Shown here: positions 24,553 to 59,487 of the stretch, piece by piece
Layout: every line of letters begins with the position of its first letter
How positions within the stretch are numbered: the stretch's first letter is position 1
Assembly: GCA_025594325.1 (NCBI GenBank)
Contig: JANHCV010000001.1
Location: forward strand, 372,001 to 436,000
From: Blastocladiella emersonii ATCC 22665
Lineage: Eukaryota; Fungi; Blastocladiomycota
Length of the DNA: 64,000 nt
Reading direction: 5' to 3'
The notes under the pieces: model-generated
The model's database searches: none
What the model was told of the DNA's origin: nothing
The model's input: only the letters and a program-made list of their open reading frames with translations
Made by a program: the position numbers and the translations under genes

Positions 24553-24761
24553 AACAATACACTTGACACACCACCCGTTCGTTGCGCACTACTCACTTTG
24601 ACCGCCGTTCCGTGACTCAACGAGCCCTTGCGTTGTCAGCCGCTACGCGCTTCGCTCGGCCAGCTCAGCTCTTGTACTTGGACGTGTGTCAGTGTCGCGC
24701 GCAAAGGGAGGTCAATCATCAAAGTGTATTCATCTTCATCGTCGTGACGAGCGACCGATTC

Positions 24762-27700
24762 CTACCACAGGGCGCGCGTCCGGCGCTCGGTCAGCGCGAC
24801 CTCGACCGTGACCGAGGCGACGAAGCGCGCGACGATGACGCGGGCTCGGCGGTCTTCGTCGGCACCAGCACCACCGGTAGCCTGCTCGGGGTGGCTCACC
24901 GCGGCGGCGGGTGCCGGAGCGGGAGCGGGGGTCGTGGCGGAGGTCGTGGCGGGGGTCGGGGCGGCGACAGCAGCGAGCACGCGCATCTCGAGGTCGTGCG
25001 CGGCCGTCTCGGTCGTGGCCAGCAGCGGGTGGGCGAACACGACGTGGCTCACGGCGAGGGCGGCGCAGCGGTAGAGGTAGGTCTCGGGGTTGAGGCAGAT
25101 GACCGACGCTGCCGTCGCCGTATCGAGCCGCTCGAACGCGCGGCAGGCGGCCTCGGACGCGGCGGCGGCCGCCGGGTGGCCCGCCGCGGTCCCGTCGATG
25201 GCACGGATCCCGCGCTCGGCGAGGGCCGCGACGAGCAGCGCGGCAAAGTCCGGGAACTGGGTCCACACGACGGTGCGCGGGCCTCGGCGATGGTCCGCCA
25301 CCGAGAGACGGCGACGCTTGCCCGCGACTGCCGTAGTTGTTGCTGTCGCTGGATCGGGTGCAGGGTCGCGCAGCGGTTGCTGTTGCTCGTACAGCCGCTG
25401 CTGCTGGACAATGTACTCGAGGATCGCCGCGAGCTTGGTGCCGTACTGCGAGGCCGAGAAGGTGGGCGGAGGTGGCGGTAGCGGCGGAAATCCGAGCGAG
25501 GTGGAAAGTGCTGCTGGAAAGGTCTCGCCGATGGACGCGAGGTGAGCCGAGAACGTCTCGCTGCTGCTCGTGGCGGCTGCAGCCGGGTGAGACGGTGCGG
25601 TGCTGGTGACGGTGACGGACGCGGAGGGGGGTATCGAAACCGGGAGGTCGTCGAGTGGAGCCGAAACGCAGTTCGCGCGGCTGACGAGGTCACGGTCCAT
25701 CGGCAGGCGACAAGCGGCGCACGCTCCGGCGACGGTGGCGGTAGCGACCCGAGTCGGGTCCGAGGAGGTACTGCGATCGCCGCCGCGACTGGCCCCGGGC
25801 CCGCTACTGCTAGCCGCGCCCGAGAAGAACACTGGGCACGAGCAACAAAAGACGTGGTTGCACGGCGTGATGGAAAACGCGTCCTGCGAGAAATGGATCG
25901 CGCTCGCGCACGACGCGCACCGAAGCGAGGCCGAGGCCGCGGGAGCGGTAGCTGATGCAGCAATCAGCTGGTGGGGGTGCTGCTGCAACCCGCGCATGAG
26001 ACCGCGCAGTTGGCGGTACCGCGAGAGAAAAGGCACTGGACCAGCTGTCGTACCCGAGGAGGTGGAGGGGGACTGAGATGATGCCGCGGAAATCGTCGAA
26101 AAGCGATTCGGAAAAGGAACAGGCTGCGGCAGCGGACACGCGGCCTGGTCGTGCGCGAGAAGAAGCTTGGCCACCGTCGGCACCACGGCGACGACCACTG
26201 ACGTTACGAACGGATCGACAGCAGCAGAAGCGGAAGCGGAAGGCGCCGCCGCCTCACCGGGACCAGCGGCGGCCGCGGTCGTGGTCGTCGTCATGCGCGT
26301 GGCCCGCTGCATGAACCCGACCCAGTCGGCGTGCGGCAGGTCCGGGAGCGCGTCGCCGAGCGGGAGGTGCTGCAGGTGGGCACGCAGCGCGCGGGCCGGC
26401 ATGCAGTCGACCCAGTCCTTGAAGTCGAACCCGTCCGACAGCTGCTTCTGCTGCGGCGGCAGCACGACGGCGTACTTGAAGCTTCCAGCGAGACCGCAGA
26501 GCAGCTGGTACGAGGTCACCTTGGGCTGCAGCACGCCGATCCGCTCGGCAAGTGCGGGAGCGAGCCCGCGCTCGCCCGCGCGGCTGCGCTTCGACAGGAG
26601 GGCATTGTACTCGGCCACGCGGGCGCGCCACGCGTCGACCGCCACGGACCCTGTCCGCTCGTGCGAGTTGAGCAAGAACACGCGGTGGAACCAGACGCGC
26701 TCGAAGATGACCTCGCCCCGGGTCGGCCCGTACGCCGCGGAGCCCGCCGCATTGAGAGCCGCGACGCGTTCAGCAAGCAGCTCCGAGAACTCGTACTGCT
26801 CGAGCGACATGTCCGTGGACAAAGACGCGGGTTCGCCGGACCCGCCACGACTGCCGCGAAACGGGCCGGGTCCGTGGTACTCGGTCTCGCCGACCAGCGA
26901 AGCAATGTGGGCGCGGTAGTCGGGATGCATGATGACGGCCGGCGCAACGAGGACGAGGTCGGCGTCGCGGATCTGGTCCCACGTCGTCGCGCGGTACTTT
27001 TCGATGCTCCAGATGGCGACGATGCGAAGCGCCGACGGATCCGAGGAAGCAGGAGTTTCGCCCGTCGTCGCGGCCGAAGCAGCGGCTAACATGGCAGCAG
27101 CAGCAGCCGCCATGGTAATGGGACGAGGTCTTGCGAGCCTTCTCGCTGATACGGGCCGAGGCATCCTGCTCGCTGAACCAAGTCCGAACATGCGATGCAG
27201 CGATTTCGGCACGTCGGCCGAGTGAAGCACGAGCAGCGTGGCCCGCGATGAAATGTACAACGACGGCCGGGCTGCCGTGTCACCCAAGAAGGCGTCAGAA
27301 GCGGAAGCGGAGGCGACGGTGGCCGTGACCGAGTCGAGGCGGCCCGGACGCACGCGGGCCAGCTGCGCAATCGACAGGAAGAGGTCCTCGGACAGCGGCG
27401 AGAAGATGGCGCCTGCGCGTATTTCCTCGCCATCGACTGGCACGACTCGGGAGCTTGTCGGTGACGATACCCGTGGCTGAGAGTAAGAAGTAGACCACAC
27501 GTCGTGCTCGGCCCAGTCGCCAATTTCGAGGTTGAAGAGCACGCCGCGCGGGCCGATGCGCAAGTGCGGCTGTCTCACGAGAGTGGAGAGCTGCTGCGAG
27601 ACCGGGAGCACGTACGGATCGGCTTCAAGATGCACGAGCCAGGTGACGAGCATGGTGTTACCGCTGTTGCTGTTGAGCAGTGCGGGACCCGAAGGCAGCG

Positions 27701-28786
27701 GTTGCGGCGGCGCCGGAGACCAAGTCGGACACCAGAGCGTGAGCAGCGGAGGAGATAGGGAGGCGGAAGCAACCTTGGAGAGCATGGACGGCGACGGGAT
27801 CGGGCGGTGCGACCGCAGCAGCCGGCGCACGGCGCGAGCGGCTCCCGGGACGCCGGCGCGCAGGCTGTGGTTGACGGCATCCGCGTCGAGGTAGAAATCG
27901 AGCGTGTAGTGGTACCAGCGGCGCCGCTTCCACTTTTTGGTCGGCTTCACCACCGTCTCAGCGGCCGCCAGCGCCGTTGCCGCCGCGGGGGTCTCGCGGA
28001 TCGCGACCATGAAGAAGGGCGCGGCGGCGGGATCCCTGCTGAACCGCACGTAGCTCGCGCGCGGCTCGGGGTCCGAGTCCAGGGCGGCCGCAGTCTGGTT
28101 TTGGAACTCGATGCCGGGAACTCCAAGGCCGAGACGGCCGTGCAGCGGGAGCCGGCGCTGCTGCAGGGCGTGGTACGTGGCGAGGTGGTAGTACTCTGGT
28201 GGCGGTGGCGGTGTTGCGGGATCGACTAGACGCGGGCCGATTTTGCCGGGCGGGGCGGGGCGGGGTGGGGTGGGGCGTTACAGCAGGAGAAGGTCGGTCA
28301 GTCTGACGCTACTAGAGATGGAAGGGGCGTGTCGTGACGTACCGGCAGAAGCGGCAAAAGGAGAGACGGGCGAGGGTGGGCCGGGATTGGCTTGGGCGGA
28401 GGAAGCAATGCGAGTGTGCTGCGAAGAGTCGTGTAACAACAGGGAAGCCACGACGCCGTCCTCGTCGGCGAGGTTCCGGATCGGCGCGCACTCGTTGAGA
28501 AGCTTGCGGGCCTCGGCGCCGTCCTTGCAGCGCTGCTCGAGCAGCGACGCGGGCGTGTGCGGGAACGGGCACCACCACCCGCGCGCCACGCGCTCGGCGA
28601 GGACGCGGCGGTCAAAGTTGGCTGCGTCGAGCGGCGGCGGCGGCGGCGTGTTGGGATCGACATCGAGAAGCTGTTGTTGGGTGGCAGCAGTAGTAGGGAC
28701 CTGGTCAATCGCAAGCAGCAGCGGCGGCGATGGGTCGCCGCAAAGCCGCCCAGCGCCGTCGGGTCCATGGAGTCCATCCGTTGCAT
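24762..28786 (-). CDS. SNF2 (Rad5/Rad16-type)-like protein with RING finger and degenerate ATPase motifs (cluster member D)
   Basis: 1095-aa ORF 24762..28049 extends upstream through phase-1 intron 28342-28226 to an exon with AERVARGWW. RING-like CASC...PCNHVFCCSC...CAAC; helicase-C-like YGTKLAAILEY...RTVVWTQFPD...VVFAHPLL...VARFVASVTVE. The available ATGs (28786/28777/28768) are out of frame with that exon, so the 5' end is uncertain. Confidence 0.7.
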
Positions 28787-28933
28787 CTAGCTAGAGTCGG
28801 TGTGCAATGCGAGGGGGGATGATGTATCAGCAGGGGCGAGAAGAGCGGCGCGGGACCCCGAAAGGGAAACGGGCGCCGCCACAGGCCAAACTGAGACGCG
28901 CGCCCGGCCACGTGCGCGTGTCGAACGCGCGGG

Positions 28934-28959
28934 TTTGCGCGCAAAACGCGAAAACGCGT
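28934..28959. promoter_or_regulatory. cluster of CGCG cell-cycle-type elements (palindrome TTTGCGCGCAAA, CGCGAAA, ACGCGT)
   Basis: Sequence tttgcgcgcaaaacgcgaaaacgcgt lies about 150-170 bp upstream of member D. It matches the SCB (CRCGAAA) and MCB (ACGCGT) consensus. Function is inferred. Confidence 0.4.
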
Positions 28960-30440
28960 CAGCCCAAAAACGAAAACGAAATTCAAATTCGTATTTGAAT
29001 TCCGTTCCTGTGTGCTTGGTTTCCGGCTTCCGGCTTCTGTTCTGTTGTCGGTCCCCCCCCTCCCTCCCATCCCCGCCTCGGCCCAATTCCGAATTGTGTG
29101 CGCTAGAGGCCATGCTCCCCTTCCCTCGCAGGGTTTTACATCCGTCTGAGTTGTTCCGGTCGCGGGTTGGGTTTCGATCCGGGGACTCAAAGGGGGGAAG
29201 ATGCATGGCATGCCCGCACACGCCTAGCGTCAGCGGAGGCCAATCCACTAACGCCCGACCTTGCTTCGCTGAGGGAGGTTGCCCATGTCCCGTATGCGTA
29301 ACAGACGGCGCGCCGGGACGCGTCCCATCGGAATCGAGGACCTTTCGGGTTCTCCCCGCGCCCCGCGCGAGTACTCGCTCCGCCGTCATTTCGACCAAAC
29401 TGTCCCCCGTCTATATCTCGCATCTCAGTCAATTAGCAAAGTCCCACATATTATTCAGTGCGAGCAACGGCTACAGCGCGTCTACTGCTCCCGCATTCGT
29501 CGTTCAGATCCAGAGTGAGAGCACCATGGCCGGCCGACACTAGCCTGCCTGATCCCTTGAAAGTCCGTCTTGGCAGTGTCGCGCAACGGCGGGTCGCGCA
29601 ATCAATCCGATGGCTGCGTCGTCGTACGTCTCGACCCGACTCGACCCGCGCGCTGAATCCGCGTCAGAGAAGCGGGACAAGCTTGCGGCTCATGAGCTCG
29701 TGAAATCGTGAGTGCCCGTCCGACGGAAACGCAAAGTGTATTCGTCAGGACCTTGCGCTCGTCACGATCGAGAAACGTCAGCTCGCCATCCGCAGCTAGT
29801 CGGCGGACGTTTCAAGGCCTCGAGGCCGGCGGATCGTCGCAAATAGCACGGTCCAACGTCGGGATCATGCTGACGCCGCCGGCGATCACGTCGATGGTTG
29901 TAGCGCGCGCGAGTACTCCGGGCCCCGACTGGGATTGAGCACAGCGAGATTGGCGAACCGTCAAGGTGTCCTGCGCCATGAGCTGGGGTCGCTGCAGCAA
30001 GCTCGGGGTGCAAGTCCTGGTTAAATCATACGTCAACGCTTTCAGTAATGCTGTCGCCACGTTCTGCGACCACGAGTACGTGATGCCGAGCCAACGCGCC
30101 GAGAAACCCGCGTGAAAAGTGCAAGTATACGAATGAAAGGTCGTTGCGCCGCTGCTTGTATGCGGGCCGGTCCGCGATCAACGCACCGTGAAGCCGACGC
30201 GACCGACGCATCGTTCATCCGAACCGTGCCGCAGCGCCAGCCTGGTGCCGTTTCAGGACGTGCTTTCGCGAGGTGCGCGTCAGTCGACTCGCCGCTGTCG
30301 CCGCCACACGAGCGCTTCTCCTCCCGCGCCTCGGAAGCCCGCATGAAGCAAGTCCATGTAACGCACCCGTACCACGGTGTCACTTCCTCCAATTTTCTGT
30401 GTCATCGTCGCCCCGCCGTTTCCTCGCTTCGCCCGCCAAA

Positions 30441-31894
30441 ATGGCGACTTGGGCTCACATCGACCTTGAGCCACTCGTGCGCATGGCCATTGTGGCTCCC
30501 GTGCAGTGCCCCGCTCTCGGGACTCACCTGTACACGGTCGCGCCGAACGGCACGCGGACCGAGCCCAAGCTTGTCAAATTCTCTGGCCTTCTCGCAGCGC
30601 TCGCGTTGGCCATTCTCTACCCCGTTGACCAGGCCGATGGGCTGTGGCACTTTGGCCTGCTGTCCTCGCTAAAGCTTCCCTTGGTCGCCGACACGCGAGT
30701 GACCGATCCTACGCAGGGCCGCGCCGCGCCGCGCCGCTGCGCTGAGCGACACCTTCACTGCGCGTCCCGAGACGCTCGAGCTGGTCGTCAACCGACTCGG
30801 CTTCGCCGCCGCCCTCTTTACCAACCGCAACTTTGACGCGCTGATCCCGCTGCTCATGGGCTGCGGCTCCGTTCCGATCATCTCCAACGGTACGCTCGCT
30901 TGTCGAATTCATCCATCGCCTACCCGCTTGGGACATTGCGCATTCGCTGCCCTCTCTTCATCGCGTGGGACTTGTACTGACCCTCGTACCCCGGCTTCTC
31001 TAGGCATCGAGCGATTCTCTGTGACCGATGCTCTCGAGGTCTTTTCCGAGCTCGACAAGCGTTACCTCACCTGGGCCATCCCCAAGCTTACCAACGGCGA
31101 CCTCACGCTTCGCTCGCTTCCTCGCCCGCTTCTCACCTTCACGACCGACAAGGACCCGCGAAACGGTGTTCCTGTTGAACAGGTCGGCGGCAGCAAGTTC
31201 AAATTTGGCGTGCTGCTCTTCCACCGCCAGTCGGGCAAGACCGTCGTCCAGTTTGTCCACGACATGCTGCAGGAGTCGGGTGCCCTCGCGAACTTGTGGA
31301 CCAACGCTCATGCCTCGACGTGCCGCACCTCATTGTCGCCGAGATCGACGACGACGGCAACGACATGGGGCTTTTGGGCGACGGTGCGTTTGGCCCTGTC
31401 GAGTCGCCCCCGTCGTACACCAAGCTCGATCTTCTGGCGCCGTTTCCTGGCGATGACGAAAGTTTCACTCGGTACGGATGAGCTTCCTGCGAGTGTGCAC
31501 CAGAAACCTATCTAACAACGGACGCGCCTTAGATACATTAATCTGGCCGGTGTCGTGTACGAGTTTTCGTGTGATCCAGGGGACCTTACTCGGCCTTGGA
31601 CTTTTGGTGGGCTAAGCTTGATTGACCGGCGGACAGGCTCGCCCGTCACCGCATTCCACGAGAACAAGTTGGATTTTGGTCGCTGTGCTCTCGCTCAGCG
31701 GCGAGGGCGGCACAGCGGACGAGTCGCTGCGATTCCCCGGTCAGCTCCGCGGGATCTCGCATATCAACTTTGCGCGCCCGCTGCTCGGCGAGACGAAAGC
31801 TGAGTCGATCGCCATGGTGAAGCATGCGGTTTTGGGTCTCACGACCCGTCGCCGAATTCGATTGCGCCAATGTGGCTCGCAGCCAGGAGGGTGA
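30441..31894 (+). pseudogene. short divergent member of the SNF2-like cluster (member E), with introns and at least two frameshifts
   Basis: Canonical introns 30890-31003 and 31472-31532; frame changes near 31310 and 31680. The C-terminal VAVLSLSGEGG...QLRGISHINFARPLLGETKAESIAMVKHAV aligns with VIVLSLNGNDG...QLGCVENVIFAHPLVAESDAASLAMVKRAL of member A. Confidence 0.5.
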
Positions 31895-32292
31895 TTTAGG
31901 AGGGTCTGATCCAGATGCGACGACGCCATGATCAAGGGATCGCGGCCGAGGGATACCACCGATTTCGCAGTTCAAGTAAGTACACTATCATGTCTGGCAG
32001 TAGTCGAGCCGTTCTTGGTGTCCGTAGCATATTGCAACATGTACAAAGGAGGGCGGCGGAAAAGGAGGAAGAGGCGGAGCATTGGCTCAAAAAGGAAAAA
32101 GATCTCTTCTCCCATCATTTGTTTTGCTTGTCCGTTCGCGCGAAGACCGCGCCGTACATGAGCACGTGGAGCACGCTGCGTCTCCGCTGTGGCCAGGGGT
32201 GCTGCTGTGGCGTCGTCGAAGTCGCTGGTCGGTGCACCTCTCGGGCGGCCCGTCCTCCTCCGTCCCTCCACCCCACGGCCTTCACGACCACC

Positions 32293-35200
32293 ATGACAGC
32301 TGATGAACCTGCTGCAAAGCGACCGCGGACCACGCGCGGTAAAAAGGCCGCCGCCGCGGCGCCTGTTCTTGCACCTTTTGTTCCGCTTGCTGTCGACGCA
32401 CCGCTTCCACGTCCTCCCGTCGACGTGACCGGACCCGAGTACCGCGCCGCCCTTCTTCATGCCGAGCGCGTTGCTTCCGGCTGGTGGATGCCGTTTGTTG
32501 ACGGCTTGGATTCCGGGACTCGCGATCAGCCGAACTCGCTCGCGAGCGCCGACGCCGTGGCCGCTTGGATTGACAGCACCGAGGTCAAGCTTGACCAACC
32601 CGGTACGCTCTCTTAAGCGCTCCTGTCAAGGCTCCAGAATTCTTACACGGGCGAACTCGTCTGTAGACTACTTTCTCGCTCACGAGTCCGTGGTGCTCGC
32701 GCGCCGACTTCCGGTGCCCGCTGATTCCCTCGATGCGACCATGAAGTGGGTGGACCCGTGCTGCCCGATGCTTGCCGAACTCAGCTTGCACCAAGAGCCC
32801 GTCTTCATGAACAGCCGAAAGCACGCGGACGGACTGAATAGCATTGGGGGCTCGAGCAAGGAGACCGTCTTCTATCGCCTCCCGGGCCGCGCGACGGCGA
32901 CCGCCGCTGGGGCCGAAGCTCATGACCTGACGGCCAAGTATTCTCGGGAACAGTTCATGTCCATCATCGAGGACGACCCCTACTTTACCCAACGCCACCG
33001 GCTCAACTGGGCCATTCTACGCAAGGACAGCAGCGCATCCGTCATCAACCTGTGCTCGCTCGCCGCCGATGCCGTCTTCTCGAAAATTTGTCTGGAACCT
33101 GCGCGCGGGGAACACGACTTGCAGGCGTCCGATGCCAACGTCCCGCCCGGCTCATTGGTGTATTCGGCCCCGTGGGCGACGACCGCGGGCACTGTGGTCA
33201 TGCCTGCGGCGTCTGTGGCTGGCTCGACCCTTCACCAAGATATCGAGCCGGCGATGCTTCCGTACCTGCGCTTTGTCCTTCGGCCGATTCGCGGCGAGGC
33301 CTACTCGGCGTTCGGCGCCCAATTCAAGTACCGCGTCGAGGTCTATCTGCGCACGGCAGCTGCCAACCGCGACCTCGCGAACGCCGAGACCGCCTCGCGT
33401 ACGCAACGCACCCTGCGCAAGCTCTTCCGCATCTATCCAGTCTCGGTGCAACGGTCGGTTGGAGCTTGGTCCTACACCGTCCCGCAGCTCGGCAAGCCTT
33501 TCTCGAATCGGTCGTTTGGCGTCCCTCTGCTGCCTCTGCATCTCGCCGCCGCGGCCTCGGACGTCGCTCGGCCCGAGCATGGCCTCCGCGACTGGATTCA
33601 CCGCCTCGAGTCAAGTGTTTACGCGCGCACCCTCACCTTTGTCGATCGTTCTCGCAGCGAGCCGTACTTCCGCCTTGGTACGCACGGCTTCGTGTACAAC
33701 TATCTGACGGGCGAGTTTGCCCGTACTTGCCCGGCCGCGTGGCTCGTTCCTGCCGTCGTGCAACCGTTCAAGACGATGGAGCTTCGCGCGGCGTTCATCG
33801 ACTCTAATCTCTCCAGCGTCTATTGCGAGCTCGTCGCGATTCCACCTTCTCACGGTGGAGCAGCGACGCGAAGCGACATGCTCTACTCGACCGCCACGCT
33901 CATCATTGCATCCTCGACGGACGCCGTCACCTTGATTGAGCGTACCGTGCTTCGCGAGCTCGGAGCGAACGCTCGTGTCGTTACGGTGCGCAACTCGACG
34001 GACCACTGTAACACGACGTGGTCGGATGTCGTCAATGCCCACGTCGTGATCGTTTCGGCCCGTTTTCTCGGCGGTCAGCTGTATAGGGCTGCTGTGCACG
34101 AGACGCTTGGACTAAAGGAGTACTTCAATCCACTTCCGCGCAGCTTCGAACTTCATCCGCACAACCTTGGCCACCTGGATCTTGGCGCATTTGATTTCCA
34201 CGAGGCTCTCGCGCAGCATACTCGGCTCGTTGCTGCTGCTCTCACTTCTGGTTCCAAGCCATCGCTCACCAACGGACCTGTCGTTTTCGAGGGCGTGCAG
34301 TATTGCCGCGCCGTGTTCGAAAACCCTCGCACCACTCCTCCTGGCTACTACGAGCAAATGCTTGCGTTTCGCGAGCGCTCAGACGAGGAAGGCGACTTGG
34401 CCAAGCCTACTACTTGGGGATCCGAGCCGACTTTCACGTCGCTGTTCGGCAGGGCTCCCAAGGCCTTGGCGACATGTTTGCGACCATCACGGACGAGTAT
34501 GCTTCCGCTTTCGGGGGCGAGACGCTGATTGCGATCGCCGAGCAGTTTGCACGGCGCGTCCTCTCGCCTCCCTCAAACCTCCGGCACTCGATTGTTGAGG
34601 TGTCCAACGTCGTCGCAACTGGTGCCTTGGCCACTCTCTCGTCCGAGCAGCTTCTTGGACGCCTACTTGCACTCCAGGCGCCACAGCTCGTTACACCGCC
34701 GGCCATCCTTCCTGCTGCTGCCTCTGATGCGGCTGCCCCGGCTCCCGCTCTTACTTCATCAGATCTCGCTCGGCTCGCAGCGCTCTACGCCAGCAATTCC
34801 GGCCGCTTCCCGCTTGATCGCTTGCAAGGCACCGCAATTGACCGCATCGGAAACAACGAGATTTCGGCCCGTGCAGCTTACTCGAGCCTCATTCGCCCGC
34901 CCCACGGCACGGCGTGGCGTTGGGCCGTTTCCGTTGGCCTTGACCTTGCAAAGCTTACGGACGTGGGCTACGAGCAGCCCGAGTTTGAAGTCGATGCACG
35001 CGCTGCCGAGGTCCCCGCGATCACGCTGTGGTTTGGAGTAGTGTTCGGCCCTGAACTCACCGGGTTCTTCCACGTGGTGCAACGGGCCATCGAGACGCAA
35101 GACGCGCTCGGGCCCGCCGTTCTTCGAGTCGCGGCCCCGCTGCTTCACGCGCCCGCCGACCACGACGTCAAACTGGATTACATCAAGACCGTGTACGGCC

Positions 35201-35691
35201 CCAAGGTGCTCGCCATCGCCGAGCAGGTCCTGGACGCCACGGGCCGCGTCGCCATCTTCTGCCAGTCGCCCGCCCTCGCCTCGCTCCTCACCACCGTCAT
35301 CAACCAGGTCCTGCGCATCAACGCCATCGACGCGTCATCGCCCAACGCGCGGCTGCGCCACGCGGCCATCAGCATCTTCCACCGCAACCCGGGCGTCTGC
35401 GTCATTGTCCTCTCGCTCAACGGCAACGACGGGTCCGCGTATGCCGCGGCCGCGCCGCCGTTCGCCCAGCAGCTGGGATGCGTTGAAAACGTCATTTTCG
35501 CGCACCCGCTCGTCGCCGAGTCGGACGCCGCGTCGCTGGCCATGGTCAAGCGCGCGCTCGACTGCGTCTCGGGGACGCCGGCGGCCGTGACGTGGTTCGT
35601 GGCCAAGGACACGATCGAGGAGGAGATCATGCGGCCGATCGCCGGCAAGTATGCGCGTGCCGCGTTTGATCCGCCGCCGCCGGAGCTGTAG
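32293..35691 (+). pseudogene. SNF2-like pseudo-ATPase, cluster member A; one frameshift near 34390-34400
   Basis: ATG 32293; intron 32603-32666 (GTACGC..GTAG, phase 1). ORF 32459..34528 must shift to ORF 34303..35691, where YYLGIRADF aligns with VYRGIRSNF of member C. No suitable intron at the shift. Ends VTWFVAKDTIEEEIMR. Confidence 0.7.
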
Positions 35692-35873
35692 ACCCTGTAA
35701 TGATGCACCAATGTACCTGTTTGTATTTATCCTTATCCGATGGTGTTCGGGGCAAGAGTGGAGCGGGGCATGCGGGGTCGACGGCGGAGTGGGAGAAGAG
35801 TTTGTGCCATGATCGCGCGGCGATGAAATGTGCGGCGCGACGCTCGCCCTCTCGAACCACCCCCTCGAAACCC

Positions 35874-35914
35874 ATGAAAACGCCCTGAACCGAATGAAAA
35901 CTACGTGCAACTAG
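35874..35914 (+). promoter_or_regulatory. pair of upstream micro-ORFs (MKTP*, MKTTCN*) before member B
   Basis: ATG AAA ACG CCC TGA (35874-35888) and ATG AAA ACT ACG TGC AAC TAG (35894-35914); main ATG at 35927. Confidence 0.45.
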
Positions 35915-35926
35915 CTCTTGATCATT

Positions 35927-38900
35927 ATGGAAACAACCCCTCGGCCTGCGAAGCGGGCTCATGCCTCGCGGTCGAAAGCCGCGTCGGCGGCGGCTCCGGC
36001 ACCTTTGTACCTCATGCCATCGATGCCGCGCGATCCCGTCGACATGAACCGCCCCGAGTATCGTGCTGCGCACTTGCATGCAGAGCGCGTCGCGTGCGGT
36101 TGGTGGTTTCCTGCAGAGCAGGTCGGCGAGCGTGGATTGGCGAGCTTGCCTGACAAGCTTGCGAGCACCGATGCGGTTGCCGCGCGGATCGATAGCACGG
36201 AGACCAAGTTCGACCAGCCCAGGACGCACGATGCTCCTTTCACGTCAAACCGTATGAGAGTGACTGACCGACTGGTTGCAAGGGCTAGACCTGAACCTCG
36301 GGTCCGATCGCTTTGAGTCGGCTCACCGGTTGCCCATGCCCAAGTCGTCCCTTGACGTTGCCATGAGGTGGATCGATCCCAACTTCCCAGTACTCGGCGA
36401 GCTTACCTTCCATCGCGAACCAGTTCTTCGCGTCAGCCGTTCGTTTCGCGGCGACGCCAGCCTGGCTCGCACCGGCCTGGCTGAGACGGAGGTCGTTCTC
36501 TCCCGATTGCCGCGGGGACCTGACTTCGCGGCCTCAGTTGACCTCAACCGCAAGCACACTCTTCGCGACTTTATCCCGGCTCTCGAATCAGATCCGTACT
36601 ACTCCATGCTTCAGCGCGACTGGACCTTCCTGCGCAAGGCCAGCGAATGTCCGGATCATGAACATCTTTGCCATGACTGGCGGTGCCGCATTTGCTCAGT
36701 CTTGCCCCGAGCCCGCGCGTCGCGCGTGTGACAAACAGGCTTCGGCTGCCGGCGTCCCGCCTGGCGCACTCACATTCTCTGCGCCGTGGGCCTCCGAGGC
36801 GGGCAACGTTCTTCTAACTACCACGTGGCAAGACAATTCGCGCTTGGACCATCGAATCGATCCGGAGATGATCCCATACTTGCGATTAGAACTGCTGCCA
36901 CTGCGAGGCGAATCCTATCCGCTGTTTGGCCACACGTTTAACTACCAAGTTCGGGCATTTTCGCGGACGTCTGCTGTCAATCGCGATCTTGCCGACCCGG
37001 CCACGGCTACTCGCGCGCGGCGAGTCGTGCGTCGGATCTTCCACTGCTTCCCGCCGTTCAAAGCTCCTTCGCACCGCGATGAGCGCACTTTGCACGGAGC
37101 TTCCTTTATTGGCCCATTTCGCGCGTTTGCCGCCCCATCGCATCTCCTACCACGACCCGGAGTGGACTGGTCTATACATGGTTTTGGCGTGCGTATCTGG
37201 CTTCATATTCTCGAGTCAAACGTCGACGCTCGGACGTTTACCTTTGTCGACCGCAACCGCAGCGAGCCGTATATCCGCCTTGGTCCACACGGCTTTGTAT
37301 ACAACCTGTTGACGGGTGAATTTGCTTCGACTTGTCCGCCCGCCTGGCTCATCCCTGCCATCGCGCAGCAGGTCGAGACCATGGAAGTACGTAGTGCCAT
37401 CGTCGAGGCCAACGCGGTTACCGAAGACTTGTACGCCGAGCTCCTTGCGCGTCAGCCAGCTGTGGTTGGTGGCGATCCCGCTTCCTCAACTGGATCCGCT
37501 TCCGCCCTTGCCTCGAAGGCCGTGCTTGTCGTTCCCAAGTCAAATACCGATGTCGAGCCCGTGATCAAGGCCACCAAGCGCGAGTTTGGTCCTTCAGCAC
37601 GCATCTTGGCGGTGCGCAACGCTGTCGAGTACCGTGCAGTGACCTGGTCCGCGCTCCTCGAGGCTGACGCCGTGATCGTCTCGCGCGGATTCTTTGGCAG
37701 CCCGCACTACCAGCAGGCCGTTTGCGATACGCTTGGACGCGACTCGTATTGCTTGCCTATTCCGCGTGCTTTCGAGTACTTGTCAAGTGATTTCCCGCTG
37801 ATCGGCGTAGCAGATCGGGACTTTGCTGATGGGCTTCGTGAGCACACCCGACGTGTGGCTTCACTACCTGATTCGGGCGACTCGGTCGTGGACGTGGACG
37901 CCGCTGGGCGAGTGATCTTCGAAGGCGTGCACTATCGCCGCGCCATCCTTGACAGCAAAAAGCCCTTCGCGGTTCGGCGTCGCCTTAGAACCAGCAACGC
38001 GGATCAAGCCAGCGATCCATGGCTCGCGTTGCCCGGCAAGGTCGAGACGGGCGAACTGGATGACCGCGTCTATCACGCACTCCGGGCGAGCTTTACAGTT
38101 GGAATTATCTCCAGCGAGCGTCTTGGCGGGACTTCCTTGCACAGTCACCTCGCGACTATTCTGGACCGCCCACTGCCGGCTGATCCCGAGACCATACACG
38201 CGCGCTCATCGAACAGTTTTACCGCAAGTCTTTGTTTGCGAGTGGCACGAAACCTCAACCCCATCGTCTTGTCGAGGTTTCCGCGCCCGCCCATATCGAC
38301 CCTTACAACTTCGATGGCTCGGCATCCATTCGCGACCAGCTTGATCAGCTTACTTTGCTCCAGGCGCGGCTCCTCGCTGCCGCGATCCCAGCCGGTGTTG
38401 CTAGCGATCCGCAGCCCAGCGCAGCACCTCTTGCGCGCATCGTGGCCTTGCTTTCGCACCGTGCGGACCCTGATTCGCCTACAGCCCGCGTCAAGCTCGA
38501 TTCCCTGCTCCGCGACGTGAGCAAGCCGCCCTCCAACAACTTGTGGGTCTGGTTCGCGTCGCTCCGCATGGACCTGCCCGACCTTGGCGAGGAGTGCCTG
38601 ACGCCCGAGGTTCTGGACCGATTCGATGCGTATTTGCGTATGCTCCCCGGTCGCGCGTTCGAGACATTGCCACGGGGCGGGAGTGCGGCTGCCGCTTTGC
38701 TAGTCAACTTCTTCCGCTGGGCCCAGCGTGTTGCCGAGTGTTACGCGGTGTTTGGTGCCCTGGCGAGCTTGGCGTTCACCCGGCTGCTTCTTTCAATGCG
38801 CCTGCTGCAGCGGTGGCGATGGAGCTCGATGGCGACGCCGACCCCGCTTCCGCTGCTGACGACGTGACTTTTGAGGCCAAGCTTGCGCGCGTCCAGGCCA

Positions 38901-39364
38901 CTTTCGGCCCCAAGCTTCACGCCGTGGTACGCGAGCTCAAGACCGCGACCGAGCGCACGGCGATCTTTTGCCAGTCGCCCGTCCTCGCCGCTCACGTCGC
39001 GTCGGCCATCGCCGCGGGCGGGATTCTCGCGGTCGACGCGGCGTCGCCCGACCCGCGGCTCCGCAACGCGGCCATCAGCATCTTCGAGCGCGAGCTCGAG
39101 ATCAAGGCCATTGTGTGCTCGCTCAACGCCGACGATGGGACCGCGGCCGCTGCGCCGCCGTACCGTGGCCAGCTCCCGTCGGCCAAGAACGTGTTCTTTG
39201 TCCATCCGCTCATAGCTGAGTCCGACAAGGACGGGCAGGTGCTGATTGAACGCGCGCTTGGGCTCTGCGGCTACGACTCGCCCGTGACCTGGTTCGTGGC
39301 CACGGACACGGTCGAGGAGGAGCTGATGCGGCCGATCGCCGCCAAGTACATTGACTTGGGGTGA
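35927..39364 (+). pseudogene. SNF2-like pseudo-ATPase, cluster member B; three frameshifts and a mutated splice donor
   Basis: Colinear with A and C. The donor position 36222 reads GGACGC instead of GTACGC. Frame changes near 36650 (+1), 38198 (-1) and 38760 (-1) are needed to follow the paralog alignment. Confidence 0.8.
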
Positions 39365-39540
39365 TTGCGCGTGTCATTGATTGTTGCTTTGTTTCGTTCA
39401 CATATTTGTATTTGCGCCTTCCGCTTTCTCCTTTGACGCGCGAAGGGAGGTGTCGGGCTTGAGCTCGCCTAAGGAGTGGAGAAGTCGCTGGTCGAGTGTG
39501 GCGAATCCGCCCTCTCTCTTCGACCGCCTCCTCCACTCCC

Positions 39541-39581
39541 ATGAAAACGCACTGAAACGAATGAATACTACATGCAAATAG
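39541..39581 (+). promoter_or_regulatory. pair of upstream micro-ORFs (MKTH*, MNTTCK*) before member C
   Basis: ATG AAA ACG CAC TGA (39541-39555) and ATG AAT ACT ACA TGC AAA TAG (39561-39581); main ATG at 39591. Confidence 0.45.
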
Positions 39582-39590
39582 ACCAGCACC

Positions 39591-42500
39591 ATGTCATCAA
39601 ACCCTAGACCTACGAAGCGAGCTCGCGCCTCGCGGTCGAAATCCGCGGTCCCTGCTCAGGCGCCGCCCTTTGTGCCGCTTGCGATTGACGCGCCGCCGCC
39701 GCGCCCCGCCATCGACGTGACCAGTCCCGAGTATCATGCTTCACGCTTGCACGCCGAGCGCGCCGCGTGTGCTTGGTGGCTTACTGCGAACCAGCTTGGC
39801 GAGCGAGCGGTGTACAGCTTGCCCGACGAGCTTGCGGCCATTGATACGGTCACCGAGTGGATGAACAGCAACGAGACGAAGTTTGATCAGCCAGGTATGC
39901 CCAACGGTCCCTTACGTTTGCGACATCTACTAACCGATTGATTTCGAGATGTAGATTTGTAACTCGGTTATAATCAGTTTCACTCGTCCCACCGGGTTCC
40001 CATGCCCGAAATATCGCTTGATTCCACCATGAAGTGGGTCGATTCCGCATGTCCCGCGCTTGGTGAGCTTACATTCCACCGCGAGCCGATCCTCCGCGTG
40101 AGCCGTCCTTGGACTGGAGTCCTCAACCTGTATGGGCAGGGCAAAAAATCGGAGACCGTCTTCTACCGGCTGCAGCAGGAGCCGGACCTCGCTGCTCCGC
40201 TTGACTACACGCGCAAGTACACGCACCGAGACTTCACTGATGTGCTCGCTGCCGATCCTTACTACAACGAGCGCCAACGGTCCAGTGCGTCGATTATGAA
40301 CATCTTCACGCTCGCCGCCGACGCCGTGTTTGCCGAGTCTTGCCTCGAGCCTGCACGTCGCGTGTGGGACATTCAACTTTCTGCCGCCGGAATCCCGCCT
40401 GGCTCACCACGCTTCTCGGCGCCCTGGACATCAAAATCCGGCCAAGTTCTCATGCCGGCACACGCCCGCAGCGAATCGCGTTTGCACGATCGGCTCGACC
40501 CCAGGATGGTCCCGTACCTGCGCTTGGAATTGCGGCCTATGCACGGGCAGGCCTACCCTTTGTTCGGCCACACCTACTGCTACCAGGTATGGGTCTTCCT
40601 GCGCACGTCCGCCGTCAATCGCGACCTCGCAAATCCGGAAACGACAGCCCAGGCGCAGCGCGCTGTTCGCCAGATCCTTCACGCCTTTCCGGTGGCCAAA
40701 CTTCAGACGTATGTCTCCAGCAGTGTGACGAAGCAAGCTAGCTTCGCCGGCTCTTTACGCGCATTTGGCGCTCCTTTGCTTCCATCGCTGGAACCTGCAG
40801 CGGATCCGTCGCGGCACGGCGCTGGCGTGCGCACCTGGCTCCACCATCTCGAGTCCAACCTCCAGGCGCGCATGTTCACGGCTGTGGATCGGATTCGCCG
40901 CGAGCCGTACTTCCGCCTTGGCCCTCACGGATTCGTCCACAACTTTCTCACAGGCGACTTTGCTCCTACTTGCCCGCCCGAATGGATTCTTCCCGCGATC
41001 ACGCAGCCCTTTGAGACCATGGAGATTCGCGGCGCCTTTGTGCAGTCGGATGATCGCTCCGAGGACTTGTACGCCGAGCTTTTGGCGCATTCGCCGGTCT
41101 CGATCAACGGCGACGGTTCCAACGAAGCTCTCGTCTCGACCGCCGTGTTTGTGGTCACCAGGTCGAACGACGAGGTCGAGCTTGTGGTTCAGGCCGCGAA
41201 GCGCGAGTTTGGTCCTGCAGCTCGCGTCCTGGCGGTGCGCAACGCGGTCGAGTACCGCGCGGCCACTTGGGCCGCGCTGGTCAAGGCCGACGTGGTTATC
41301 GTCTCGCGCGGATTCTTGGCGAGCGCGCATTACCGGCAGGCTGTCTGCGGCGAGCTTGGCTTCGACACGTATTGCTTGCCTATTCCTCGCGCTTTCGAGA
41401 GCAGTCCGCACAGCTTCCCGCAGCTGCGCGAGGACGACTTTGATTTTGCGCAGTGCCTCCGCGAGCATACGCGGCGCGTGTCCAGCTTACTTGTTTCGGG
41501 CGACGAACCTGCTGGGCGCGTTATCTTCGAGGGCACGTACTACCGCAAGGCGATTCTTGATGACTTTGAGCAGAGGTTGCCAGACGCATTCGAGCACGAG
41601 AAACGGACAGACCAATGGCTGACTTTGGGCGACGGATCCGAGATTGGTTACCCGGACTCGCGCGTGTACCGGGGGATTCGCTCGAACTTCACAATCGGGC
41701 TCATTGACGACGGGTGCGATTATTCGCCGCACGAACACCTCCCGATAGTGCTGGACTGCGTCCCACCGACCAGTCCCGAGGACACGAGCGCAATGGTTCA
41801 GCAATTCTTTCGTGATGTGCCACCGCTTGCAGCCCGGCCTCGGCCGCACCGCCTTGTCGAGGTCTCGGCGCCTGTTCACGTCGACGCGCTCTCATTTGAT
41901 GGATCCGCGTCGCTTCGCGAACGACTCGACCAGCTCACTTTGCTTCAGACACCGCTTCTTGTCGCGACTTTGACCACCGCAGTCGCTGACCCGCAGCCCA
42001 CCACTGCATCGCTTGCACGGGTCGCGGCGCTCGTTTCTCACCACCGACTCGCCGCCCACCTCGATACTCCCGCCGGTGACGTGACGTTTGATTCGGAGCT
42101 CTACCAGGGGAGCAAGCTCCACGTCACCGAGCCGTGGATCTGGTTCGCGTCGCTTGACCTGGACGTGGACCTGCTTGGCTTTAGCGTGGAGCACATGCAC
42201 CCCACGGCGCTCAGCAACGCGAGCACGCAGCTCCGCACCGTCCCGGGCCACGGACTCGAACATACGCACCCGGACGGCGTCCATTTTCTTTCCCTGCTGC
42301 TTACCTTCTTCCGGTGGGCGCAGGCCGTGACCGAGTTCTACACGGCGCTCGATCCCGCGGGCGAGCTGGACATCCAATTCCCTGCTTCGCGTGCCAGCCG
42401 CGCGGGATCCGCGGTTGATTACACGGTCGAGTTCGCACGCGTCAAGGCTTCCTTTGGCCCAAAACTCCACGCTGTGGTCCGCGAGCTCAAGGCCGCGGCC

Positions 42501-42914
42501 GGGCGCACGGCCATCTTCTGCCAGTCGCCGGTCCTCGCCGCTTACGTCGCGTCGGCCATCGCCGCGGGCGGGATTCTCGCGGTCGACGCGGCGTCGCCCG
42601 ATGCGCGCCTGCGTAGCGCGGCTATCAGCATCTTCGAGCGCGAGCTCGAGATCAAGGCCGTCGTGTGCTCGCTCAACGGCGAGGATGGGACCGCGGCGAC
42701 CGCGCCGCCGCATCGTGGCCAGCTTGCGTCGGCTAAGAACGTGTTTTTCGTCCATCCGCTGGTTGCCGAATCCGACGAGGACGCGCAGGAGCTGATTCAG
42801 CGCGCACTCGCGGTCTGCAGCTACGACTCGCCCGTGACGTGGTTCGTGGCCAAGGACACGGTCGAAAAGGAGCTGATGCGGCCGATCGCGGCCAAGTACG
42901 TCCATCTGGACTAA
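39591..42914 (+). pseudogene. SNF2-like pseudo-ATPase, cluster member C; in-frame TAA just after intron 1, then an intact 970-aa ORF
   Basis: Exon 1 39591-39894; intron 39895-39954 (GTATGC, CTAAC, GTAG). Exon 2 reads (G)AT TTG TAA CTC, with TAA at 39960-39962, in frame with ORF 40002..42914. Confidence 0.7.
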
Positions 42915-52862: not shown

Positions 52863-55800
52863 TTACGACCCGCCTGGCTGCGGTCCCTGCTGCTGCCCCT
52901 TGGTCGGCGACGCGGACGCGCCGCGGCTCGGCATCGGGAACGCGGGCGCGGCGGCCGACGACGCGTGTGGCCGCTGCTGCGGCGACCGGCTGGACCGTGC
53001 TGCTGGAGCCACGGCGGGCCGCGGCGGGAGCGGGACCTGGCCGGGTACGGGCGCCGCGCCGGCGGCGGCGTGCTGTCGGTACTGTCCGTCGAGGTGCGCC
53101 TTGGACACGGGCGCGCGGCCGGGATCCGGCACTGGCGCCGCGGTCACGCTCGGTGCACCACCAGCAACACCCGGCGCCGCCGCCGCGCCGCTGGACGTCG
53201 CAGCCGAAGCCGCCGCGGCCGCGGTCGCCGCCTCGAACGTGGCCGACAGCCGGTGCGCCGTCTGGTACATGTGGTACGATGACGGCAAGCCGCCCATGGC
53301 CGCGGGCGGCGGCGGCGGGAGCACCGGGTTACTACCGGCCCTTGGCACCGTCGCCGTAGGCGCAGGTGCAGGCTGGCTCTGCTTCCGCGCGCGCTTGGCG
53401 GGCGACGGGTTGTCCTCGACCTTGCCCTCGCCGGCGGAGACCCGCTTGACGGGCGACGCGCCCTGGGGCGGCAGCATCGGAGGCGGCGGCGAGACGGCGC
53501 TCGACCGGCGCTCGGCCGCCGACACGGGCGATCGCGCGGACGGCGGCGGGATCACGGGCGGCGGGACCACGGGCGGCGGGACCACGGGCGGCGGGATCAC
53601 GGGCGGCGGGCTTTTGGTCGCGCCGCGCGGGACGGGGGCGGCCGGCGCCGTGATGTCGCCGCGGAGCACGCGCTCGAGCGACGACTTAGACGGAGGCGCA
53701 ACAGCACCAGCAGCACCACCACCGCTGGGCCGGCTCGGCAGGGGGACCGGGCTGGTCGACGACGTGCCAGCTGGCGCGGGCGTGGCCGAAGACGCCGAGA
53801 CCGTATCCTGCGGGCTGCGCGAGGCCTGCTGCTGCTGCTGGCCGGGGACCGGCGCCGACGCGCCGACGGGCGACCGCGGCTGCTGCTGGGCGGCGAGCGG
53901 AGGCCCGTGCATCGGCGGCAGCGGGCGCATGTCGTACGCGGAGGGCCCGTACGGGTACCCGGGCGGCGGGGGCGGGTAGTGCCCGGGCGGCGGGGGCGGG
54001 GGCGGCGGGTAGTGCGACGCGTAGTGGTGCTGGTGGTAGTCGTAGTGCGCGGCCATCATGTCGTGCGGCGGGGGCGGGGGAGGCGGCGGGAGGTGCGAGG
54101 GCGGAGGCGGCGGCGGCGGGTACCCCATCGCGTGGTGGTGCGGGTGGTGCGGGTGGTGGTATGCGTCGGGCGGCGGGCCGGGCATGTAGTACGGGTACCC
54201 GGGCGGCGGCGGCGGCGGGAGCGGCAGCGGGAGCGGCGGGTACTGGTACCCGGACGGCGGCATGACCACGATGCTGCCCATGTCGGGCGGCGTCATGCGG
54301 CCGCCGTTGTACCCGGACACGTGGTGCGGCGGGTGCTGCTGCTGCGACGCGTGCGAGTCCACGTCCATCTGGTCGTTGGCGCCCGCCGCGGCGGCCGCGG
54401 CAGCCTCGCCCTCGGGCCCCGCGGGCCCGCCGCCGAGCGCGGCGAGCCGGTCGACGTCGGGCGGGAGCGAGTGCTCGCGCTGGGTGCGGTAGTCGGTGAG
54501 GCCGAGGGCGATGCACTGGAGGTTAAAGAGGTCGGAACGCTCGCTGTGGTACTGGCGGAGGCGCTCGATCTCGGCGAGGTACCCCTTCTTGATGTTGACG
54601 TCGAGGTCGCACCACTGCTTGGCGAGGTAGGTGCGCACCGCGTGGTGGTCGCCCTTGATGACGCGCTTGGTCGCGTCCCAGTGCACCTTGAGGAACAGGA
54701 GGAACGGGTTCTTGATGGTCGGTTTCGGCGGCACGGGCATGAGCCGGTCGGGCAGCGCCTTGAGCGACCCGCGCTCGTTGGGCGTCAGGTACTGGTTGCG
54801 GTCCTTTTCGGGGATGTGCGATACGAGGTGCAGGTGGAACGCCGCGGGCGTGGCCGTGATCACGTCGCACGTCAGCAGCGTGCACGGCAGCAGCACCTCG
54901 TCGCCCGGCCCGTACGGCCACCCGGCGCCCGGCGCGAGGTACCACGTGTGGCCCGCGAGCTCGGCACGGAGCGCCGCGCGCCGCTGCCGCCGCCGGATCG
55001 GCCGGCTCTTCTTGCCGCCGGGGCTCGACGCGTTGGCGGACCCGTTCCCGTCGGTCGCCGCCGTCGTCAACGTCATGGGCGAGCTGGGCGCCGTCAACGG
55101 CGGCTCGCCGGCGAGCAGCTGCAGGTTCGGCGTGAGCATCGCCGACACGCTCGGCGTGCTGCCGGCCGTGTCCCCACCACCGCCGCCGTCGTCCGTCTCG
55201 TCGCCGGCCGACGAGTTGTCAAAGATGTCGGGCGTCGACACGCGCGAGAGCGGGGACGCGGCGCGGCGCACGGCGGCGGGCGGGGGCATCTCGGGCATAG
55301 CCGGTATGTCGACGGGCGTATCCGCGCGCGACACGGCCCGCGAGGCCGGACGCGAAGCCGGGCGCGAGGATGGGCGGGAAGATGGACGCGACGACGCAGG
55401 CGTCGCGGCGGCGGCCGGTGCAGGATCGGCGGAGTGCGGTCCGACCGTGACGGCAGCAACCGGCGCGGCAGCAGCCGGCCCGCGTTTGCGCTTTTGCGGG
55501 ACCGACGCGGGCGTCGCCTCCTTGGCCGGGGCAGCCGGAGCCGCAGCCGCAGCCGCGGCGGCAGCAGCAGCAGCGGCAGCAGCAGCCTCGGCCTTGCGGA
55601 CGGCGGCGGCGGTCGGTTTGCGAGAGCCGCTGCGGTTCGACTTGGTGGGCGCCGGCTTTTCAGCGGGTGCGGGCTTCTCGGCCTTGTTGGCGGGGGCCGC
55701 GGGAGCGGGAGCAGCAGCAGCAGCCGCCGCAGCAGCAGCCGTGGCCGCCCGCGTCGCCGGCTTGGCGGTCGCCGAACTCGCGGCAGCCGCGGTCGCGCCG

Positions 55801-58727: not shown

Positions 58728-59487
58728 TCGGCTACATGCGGTCAAGTCATCGAGTCAGGGGGCGTCCGCGTTCGGCTTTTGGTGGGAGGAGAGCGTACCG
58801 GTCCAGAGTCTACGTTTTTTTCTCTCGGGCAATACAGGGTGCGGCGAAGCGCAGGCAGATGCGGATGGTCGGGTCGGGTCGGGTCGACGGTCGAGGTGGG
58901 GCTGGCTGTGCGACGGCGGACGTGAGGCTCATCAGCGTCAGTGCACTCACTCATCCAAGACGGATCACAGCGCGACGCACCAGCAGGTGTATTCACAAGA
59001 ACGGCAAACGTAGAAAAATCGATCAGGCAGTGGGATCAGACGCCGCGCGGACGGGCAGTGGCGGCGTCGGGCGGGGCGGGGTCGAGGGTTCGTCGGTGCC
59101 GGTTCGCGGGCGCGGGACGGTGCATGGGGGCCCGGCGAGGCTGGATACAGCGAGTGCACCAAGTCGGGTGCGGCGAGGAGCGGGCGGGGGCGGACGGGCG
59201 GGAGGGGGGCGACGGCGGGGGCGGGGGCGCGCCGACGGGCCGGCCGAACCGCCCGCAACGTGTCGTTGACATGCACGCGACCACACGTGCGTCATATCGC
59301 CGCGATATTCAACGCGTTTCCGGCTCGATCGCCGATGGTTCTTTGATCCTAATAGCGCGCGCTGATTGATCGAAATAGTCTGCTGAGGTCCCAAGGGTTG
59401 TAAATAGTCGAACGCGCTCCCCTCTCGGATCACGATCAGCGGTCGAAAGCTAGTGTACAGGTCTATTCCACCCCATCCCGCCTCAGA

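Follow-up and report, generated by a model that had tools for sequence, protein, structure and literature searches.

The DNA analysed here (the window; 64 000 nucleotides at roughly 372-436 kb of contig JANHCV010000001 of Blastocladiella emersonii ATCC 22665) carries, between positions 24762 and 42914, a cluster of related genes that we call D, A, B and C, and a short relic, E. Judged from sequence and predicted structure, the analysis confirms a real, ATPase-dead family of SNF2-RING pseudoenzymes under birth-and-death evolution. It is likely that the cluster belongs to a B. emersonii-specific family, duplicating both in tandem and by segments, whose members are ATPase-dead paralogues of a blastoclad SNF2-RING-helicase with DNMT5 as its closest solved relative. 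Both the identity of the genes as SNF2-RING relatives and the loss of catalysis are well supported.

An earlier note on this DNA had read the genes by eye as SNF2 two-lobe folds that recall Rad5/Rad16 and DNMT5, with every catalytic motif gone. This reading is upheld by alignment and by comparison of the predicted folds (AlphaFold 2, AF2; Foldseek; VIA). The RecA lobes match SNF2 proteins, a proper alignment brings no GKT or DExH motif to light, and DNMT5 is the best match in the PDB by sequence and by structure.

Loss of the ATPase motifs

The intact relatives of the family, aligned with MAFFT, carry GxGKT, DE[MLVIC]H, LTG[ST]P, a C3HC4 RING and QGIARAVRAGQ. The four ATPase motifs are missing at the aligned positions in all 12 of the 12 dead paralogues aligned. 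At Walker A the intact relatives read GAIDASRVGAGKT whereas the dead members read GAFVQSDDRSEDL, and the position of the intact GAGKT is occupied by RSEDL in C, LSS-V in A, VTEDL in B and LSEDL in D. The Walker B position (VDEMHE in the intact proteins) reads LDDFEQ in C, FENPRT in A, LDSKKP in B and LLNSHE in D; that of motif III (GLTGSP) reads GLIDDG in C and AVVPPQ in D; and that of motif VI (QGIARAVRAGQ) reads QRALAVCSY in C and MRVLAAVAA in D. The substitutions listed by eye in the earlier note proved correct once the genes were aligned to the intact relatives. Conserved blocks common to the intact relatives bracket each motif on both sides and the register of the alignment is therefore secure. 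There is no GK[ST] or DExH-like string at the aligned motif I or motif II position in any dead paralogue, and the only GK[ST]-like strings among them, in P0013 and P0019, are far C-terminal. Because four motifs have been lost we infer that ATP-driven translocation is excluded; the proteins are predicted to be unable to bind or hydrolyse ATP in the SNF2 manner and hence would not move along DNA.

The RING ligands have been kept in one part of the family. In D all eight of the eight ligands are in the right place and align with the RING of the intact relatives; the Pfam match to zf-RING_5 is weak (E 0.23) in D and reaches E 7e-5 in its paralogue H9P43_000170. The ligands are kept throughout the D-type branch. 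There is no RING cysteine pattern at the aligned position in A, B or C. Pfam found neither a C5 methyltransferase domain (PF00145), as the earlier note had observed, nor a HIRAN domain in the local members or in the intact blastoclad relatives.

Link to SNF2 proteins and the intact relatives

With matches accepted up to E 1, Pfam found neither SNF2-rel_dom (PF00176) nor Helicase_C (PF00271) in the local members or the D-type paralogues. Searches of PDB sequences with single members gave no match, and a word-index protein search returned same-genome paralogues only. The only Pfam matches in these proteins are the weak ones to a RING, and the link to SNF2 is transitive, running through the family profile to proteins that have both domains. 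Against PDB sequences this profile has a sole match, Cryptococcus neoformans DNMT5 (7r76_A, deposited under the name 'DNA repair protein Rad8'), with E 2.2e-7 in the RecA2 region and a weaker stretch in RecA1.

An exhaustive HMMER search of 1.84 billion representatives gave 418 matches. The top matches are B. emersonii paralogues on at least six contigs (H9P43_000142/143/170/171, 002733, 002960/002969, 004497, 006013/041/048/081, 006924 and 008299-008302). The dead family of this genome comprises about 20 gene models over at least six contigs, so that its description as a locally expanded family has to be given up. The next tier of matches (E 1e-58 to 1e-27) consists of H9P43_008249, which B. 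emersonii itself encodes, and of proteins from Catenaria, B. britannica and Allomyces. H9P43_008249 and the other intact blastoclad relatives have SNF2-rel_dom above the Pfam threshold, a RING and mostly Helicase_C, in that order. Weaker matches, of 2100-2350 residues, are true DNMT5 proteins with a DNA_methylase domain. The best matches of the intact parent among PDB sequences are DNMT5 (5e-13) and then Rad5 (7e-11). The closest solved relative of the blastoclad SNF2-RING-helicase is the DNMT5 ATPase module, which is also the best PDB match of the dead family in both sequence and structure.

One of the paralogues, H9P43_006081 (P0010, on another contig), is modelled as an mRNA capping enzyme (PF01331 and PF03919; residues 37-337) joined to a dead member (residues 672-1607). 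This fusion may be due to ab initio joining of neighbouring genes.

Predicted fold

The AF2 model of C has a predicted local distance difference test score (pLDDT) of 71.6, with confident cores at residues 1-230, 270-520 and 805-965, and that of D has a pLDDT of 67.7. With C as the query, the first three Foldseek matches in the PDB are DNMT5 (E 1.7e-14 to 3e-13), followed by EP400, SRCAP, Rad5, SWR1, INO80, Mot1, ISW1 and Chd1. VIA-align places residues 222-970 of C onto residues 1370-2307 of DNMT5 with Z 20.2, and residues 94-1091 of the D model onto residues 1381-2295 of the DNMT5 chain in 7r78 with Z 20.8; the remaining SNF2 proteins score Z of about 16-18 (Rad5, Z 17.7 for D). The top 50 Foldseek and VIA matches of both models are SNF2 or other SF2 helicases. 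The layout published for DNMT5, which is RecA1, helical domain, RING2 and RecA2 (10.1101/2021.10.01.462825), fits. Additionally, there is a beta-rich N-terminal module (C residues 1-230; window 40002-40700) that is modelled confidently, has no Pfam match and is common to the dead and the intact proteins.

Structure of the genes in the window

Scanned in all six frames with the family profile, the whole window yielded D, A, B, C and a short relic, E, and no further member. The earlier note had counted five related members; the relationship of D, A, B and C holds and E is reduced to a relic of 53 residues. The ancestral gene plan is an exon 1 of about 100-150 codons carrying AERxAxxWW, a short phase-1 intron and then a single long exon. 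The features are as follows.

24762..28225, minus strand: D exon 2 (H9P43_000161), including a 1095-codon open reading frame (ORF) at 24762-28049 plus stop
25665..25922, minus strand: D RING finger, with eight of eight zinc ligands (CxxC...CxHxxCxxC...CxxC); the last pair is preceded by a loop of about 38 residues
28226..28342, minus strand: D intron, 117 nt, phase 1, GTACGT...CTGAC...TAG, intact
28343..28785, minus strand: D exon 1, AERVARGWW; profile match at 28422-28685 with independent E-value (i-E) 3e-20
31673..31831, plus strand: E, relic of the C-terminal FxHPL block, 53 residues; i-E 1.9e-4, profile positions 1002-1050
32293..32602, plus strand: A exon 1, AERVASGWW; i-E 1.5e-37
32603..32666, plus strand: A intron, 64 nt, GTACGC...TGTAG, intact; splicing restores the frame
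32667..35691, plus strand: A exon 2, pseudogene, in frame 2 to about 34390 and then in frame 1 to the stop
35927..39364, plus strand: B, pseudogene, with exon 1 at 35927-36221
39591..39894, plus strand: C exon 1, AERAACAWW; i-E 5e-35
39895..39954, plus strand: C intron, 60 nt, GTATGC, branch point TACTAAC, TGTAG, intact
39955..42914, plus strand: C exon 2, with an in-frame TAA at 39960-39962, three codons in, and a 970-codon ORF that is intact from the ATG at 40002

Exon 2 of D encodes the end of the N-terminal module, a dead RecA1-like lobe, the helical insert, the RING and a dead RecA2-like lobe. Removal of the D intron gives a product that agrees with gene model P0003. The homologous coding frame begins at about 28720, and the ATG at 28785 lies in another frame. 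This break may be a frameshifting deletion relative to H9P43_000170/171, or it may be bridged by a GC-AG intron as annotated; the latter is doubtful. The family profile detects nothing but E between 28700 and 32290, and E itself is a pseudogene fragment.

In A, the spliced reading agrees with the DYFLAH exon start in gene model P0002, and there is a single frameshift, between about 34390 and 34410. In B, the equivalent of the intron (36222-36288) has GG in place of GT and the donor is lost; there are three frameshifts, near 36620-36645, 38190-38210 and 38750-38810. Exon 2 of C encodes the N-terminal module, a dead RecA1-like lobe, an insert without a RING and a dead RecA2-like lobe.

We considered whether the lesions might be introns. 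In A, B and C the first junction is indeed one, the conserved phase-1 intron of 60-67 nt; for the remaining shifts the idea is rejected. The later frame changes in A and B are not introns, because homologous coding sequence runs contiguously across each of them. Unitigs from three sequencing runs were compared with 35494-39023, a stretch that spans all the B lesions, with 0 differences and 0 gaps, and the B lesions are therefore not assembly errors. At the A frameshift the X1 and X2 unitigs are identical to the window across the site, and the X3 unitig covers it with a joint at 34300. Unitig coverage leaves out 39634-40100, and the TAA of C at 39960 rests on the assembly sequence. Adaptor remnants in loose-end sequences suggest that one of the runs was of a different (454-type) technology.

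Homology among the members and local duplication

In a tblastn search of the window (64-kb search space), C finds A at 43 and 36 % identity in two frames, B at 52, 55, 46 and 81 % in four frames and D weakly, at 25-28 % (E 7e-7 and 5e-5). The identity between D and A/B/C is about 25-30 % overall. Compared profile to profile, the A/B/C and D-type alignments match with 98.5 % probability (E 2.8e-15, 313 columns). In a local MAFFT alignment, for which the frameshifted members were entered as X-joined conceptual proteins, D and A/B/C are collinear from AERVAxGWW to the VxxFVAxxTxE tail. By these comparisons D, on the minus strand, and A, B and C, on the plus strand, are collinear homologues. All of the shared motifs that the earlier note quoted are there (HLE...PYxRLGPxG, ADxVxV, VIFExxxxxR, KLxA, IFCQ/VWTQ, FxHPL and the tail).

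There is also evidence of recent copying. Window positions 24713-31605 are repeated about 90 kb upstream on the same contig (L002:7160-14056) as a 6.9-kb segmental duplication with 99.3 % identity, and all 46 differences are confined to 30047-31580 and 24715-24735. The 5.3 kb that hold D, its intron and 2 kb upstream are 100 % identical to the H9P43_000142 copy and the adjoining 1.5 kb differ by about 3 %, which suggests very recent copying or gene conversion. Since the two sequences are identical throughout the gene, this pair gives no usable ratio of non-synonymous to synonymous substitution (dN/dS).

The 3' ends of B and C (38864-39358 and 42414-42908) have 81 % amino-acid identity and a dS of 0.43, compared with a dS of 1.2-1.5 elsewhere, suggesting gene conversion between the tandem copies. 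The D-type paralogue H9P43_000170, just past the window, is intact: it has two exons, one of them of 1210 codons, and a single intron. Beyond H9P43_000171, about 13 kb past the window end, L001:22884-23143 is 88 % identical to window 32281-32531 (an A-type exon 1) and is probably a further relic of the dead SNF2-RING family.

Evolution and selection

A quick tree made with IQ-TREE groups the 13 dead B. emersonii rows in a single clade (SH-aLRT 99); this clade, that of the intact Blastocladiella/Catenaria proteins and an Allomyces clade form an unresolved three-way split. On this tree the motifs were lost a single time, basally in the B. emersonii clade, which then diversified. The Allomyces clade contains two proteins that lack Walker A, Walker B, motif III and motif VI and retain the RING ligands. 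One, A. javanicus GGF32_001847 (P0029), adjoins the intact GGF32_001848 (P0025) by locus-tag order; the other is A. arbusculus GGF31_008223 (P0031). The dead lineage of Allomyces is independent of that of Blastocladiella.

The dN/dS values by the Nei-Gojobori method (NG86), which is crude at dS above 1 and under strong genomic codon bias, are 0.23-0.28 for C-B and 0.37-0.45 for C-A. For D against H9P43_000170 the value is 0.52 (dS 0.43, dN 0.22), which by a hand estimate is roughly six standard errors below 1, and it is 0.45-0.55 in every domain. With dN/dS at 0.23-0.6, coding constraint outlasted the loss of the motifs. Although it has diverged to about 25 % identity, the family still has frames that stay open for roughly 900-1200 codons, as well as its structural motifs and RING ligands. 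Taken together, the long frames, the surviving motifs and RING ligands, the dN/dS below 1 and the parallel origin in Allomyces suggest that the dead proteins had, and that intact copies probably still have, a non-catalytic role.

Genomic setting and annotation

The assembly was made from PacBio HiFi reads and polished by Pilon with Illumina reads, and its gene models are ab initio predictions (PMC9730499). The annotated counterparts in the window are H9P43_000161, which is D; H9P43_000162, which is an upstream body plus A; and H9P43_000163, which is B plus C. The GenBank model H9P43_000162 is chimeric, with an unrelated upstream body spliced onto A (window 30400-35691), and so is H9P43_000163, in which pieces of B are spliced onto C (window 36500-42914). 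These two models, spliced around the lesions, mask pseudogenes.

The ORFs that flank the cluster encode a protein with a PI3/PI4-kinase domain, LTV1, a protein disulfide isomerase, a protein kinase, an LSD1-like SWIRM amine oxidase and an M3 peptidase. As these are ordinary housekeeping genes, the cluster is embedded in normal chromosome rather than in a foreign island. The amine oxidase is a 1960-codon ORF (window 52863-58745, minus strand) for an LSD1-type histone demethylase (SWIRM and amine oxidase domains) and is an ordinary chromatin gene near the cluster. The Pfam scans of the window showed no DUF4470 gene. The GC content at third codon positions (GC3) is 0.64-0.86 in the family members, with the minimum in B, the most damaged, and 0.90-0.96 in the flanking housekeeping genes. 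The lowered GC3 of the family produces a compositional step between 24762-42914 and the flanks.

Proposed origin and alternative explanations

We propose that the parent of the family was an intact blastoclad SNF2-RING-helicase, and H9P43_008249 is an intact catalytic paralogue in the same genome. The dead paralogues have retained the AERxAxxWW exon, the beta-rich N-terminal module, a RecA1-like lobe, the helical insert and a RecA2-like lobe, together with the RING in D-type copies, and have lost the lysine and threonine of the P-loop, the DE of Walker B, motif III and the arginines of motif VI. The family is in birth-and-death turnover, seen in the window in the pseudogenes A, B and E, in C, which a stop separates from its exon 1, and in D, which may be cut from its start codon. 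The surviving members would work without ATP as binding scaffolds, and the D-type copies might serve either as RING E3 or adaptor proteins or by partnering or regulating the intact H9P43_008249. The most economical guess would be that the dead proteins are binding scaffolds, E3 adaptors or partners of the intact paralogue. The observations that point to an adaptor or decoy role are two, a dN/dS below 1 and the retention of the RING ligands in the D-type branch, and the role is a putative one.

Several points weigh against this proposal. Every local copy bears at least one lesion; A, B and E are pseudogenes, and C and apparently D each have a lesion that disconnects exon 1. The gene models are derived ab initio. 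The lowered GC3 fits low expression or decay. The dN/dS of about 0.5 between D and H9P43_000170 is nearly uniform over folded and disordered parts, which suggests weak constraint, and the NG86 estimates carry the limits given above. Finally, the match in fold is not independent of the link in sequence, because the AF2 input alignments hold canonical SNF2 relatives. An alternative is that the whole family is non-functional, being made up of decaying duplicates of an intact SNF2-RING gene that arose by segmental duplication and gene conversion and have had no protein-level role since the motifs were lost. The lesions in five of the five local copies, the uniform dN/dS, the lowered GC3, the many fragmentary models genome-wide (199-721 residues) and the 5.3 kb of identity between D and its duplicate would all agree with this. 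However, the loss of the motifs is common to the whole clade, yet subclades at about 25 % identity keep collinear frames of about 900-1200 codons and their structural motifs; C-B has a low dN/dS, and that of D against H9P43_000170 is significantly below 1; the zinc ligands of the RING are retained in the D-type branch; there are full-length members such as H9P43_000170; and the dead paralogues of Allomyces, independent in origin, have kept the RING. We consider wholesale decay unlikely. A wider proposal is that ATPase-dead SNF2-RING paralogues are a recurrent functional class in the Blastocladiomycota, with one origin in Blastocladiella, followed by expansion to about 20 loci, and one in Allomyces. 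They would partner, regulate or act as decoys for the intact DNMT5-like SNF2-RING ATPase without using ATP, and be turned over through genetic conflict such as defence against mobile elements or viruses; this is possible and at present doubtful.

Two further explanations are much less probable than these. A language-model feature search with D returned mostly Nucleocytoviricota clusters of the SNF2-RING-Helicase_C kind (score 0.89-0.91), one family model (H9P43_006081) is fused to a capping enzyme domain, and the family is multicopy with a composition unlike that of its flanks, all of which could suggest genes of a giant virus or of another integrated mobile element of non-cellular origin. However, the feature-search scores are leads without an alignment. 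All of the nearest HMMER relatives are cellular proteins of blastoclads, namely of this genome, B. britannica, Catenaria and Allomyces; in the tree the dead clade groups with blastoclad clades, apart from the more distant non-blastoclad rows; and the genes have spliceosomal introns with fungal branch points and ordinary housekeeping neighbours. The viral lead is contradicted by the HMMER matches, tree, introns and flanks and was rejected; a viral origin is very improbable. It is slightly more improbable still that the proteins are ATPases that use non-canonical residues, or that the losses are artefacts of alignment or assembly. With such high divergence the register could in principle be wrong, and the string SEDL[YF] turns up repeatedly at the Walker A position, in the A/B/C branch as well as in the D-type branch. 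Against this, the conserved flanking blocks pin the register, neither motif I nor motif II has a counterpart at its aligned position, four independent motifs have been lost jointly, and the sequence is backed by reads of more than one run as well as by the HiFi assembly. A B. emersonii-specific family of ATPase-dead paralogues remains the explanation that we prefer.

Comparison with known systems

DNMT5 of C. neoformans (PDB 7R76/7R77/7R78/7T02) has in common with the dead family the order of RecA1, helical insert, RING and RecA2 and the FxxPL-type motif V region. Methylation by DNMT5 requires ATP hydrolysis. Unlike DNMT5, the dead family has no C5 methyltransferase domain, chromodomain or RING1 by Pfam, and it has lost Walker A, Walker B, motif III and motif VI, while in A, B and C the RING is missing as well; it has its own N-terminal exon and beta-rich module. 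The parent lineage is represented by the intact blastoclad SNF2-RING-helicases (H9P43_008249, Catenaria BCR44DRAFT_1484339, B. britannica BC828DRAFT_375762 and the Allomyces paralogues). These are collinear with the dead family over the full length, through AERxAxxWW, the N-terminal module, the RLGPxG block, the RING position and the C-terminal tail, but they keep GxGKT, DE[MLVIC]H, LTG[ST]P and QGIARAVRAGQ, whereas the members in the window keep none of them. Proteins of the Rad5/Rad16/HLTF type (e.g. Kluyveromyces lactis Rad5, PDB 6L8N) have a RING between the two lobes, as the D-type copies seem to. In contrast with Rad5, no HIRAN was detected by Pfam and the local members are catalytically dead, and the match is weaker than that to DNMT5.

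The inactive C-terminal helicase cassette of Brr2 is a pseudoenzyme NTPase that has kept the RecA-type fold and lost the catalytic residues, and it is presumed to be a regulatory or scaffolding partner. Unlike this cassette, the dead family is free-standing, multicopy and rapidly turning over, and is neither a fixed domain nor a single orthologue. SNF2 proteins are regarded as obligate ATP-driven DNA translocases, and a narrow search of the literature found no description of a free-standing SNF2 family that has lost all of the catalytic motifs.

In summary, the family provides a natural series. Its stages are an intact parent in the same genome, dead paralogues of full length and fresh pseudogenes, and there is a second, independent origin in Allomyces. 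This series could reveal what the SNF2-RING scaffold does without ATP, and how pseudoenzymes arise and decay.

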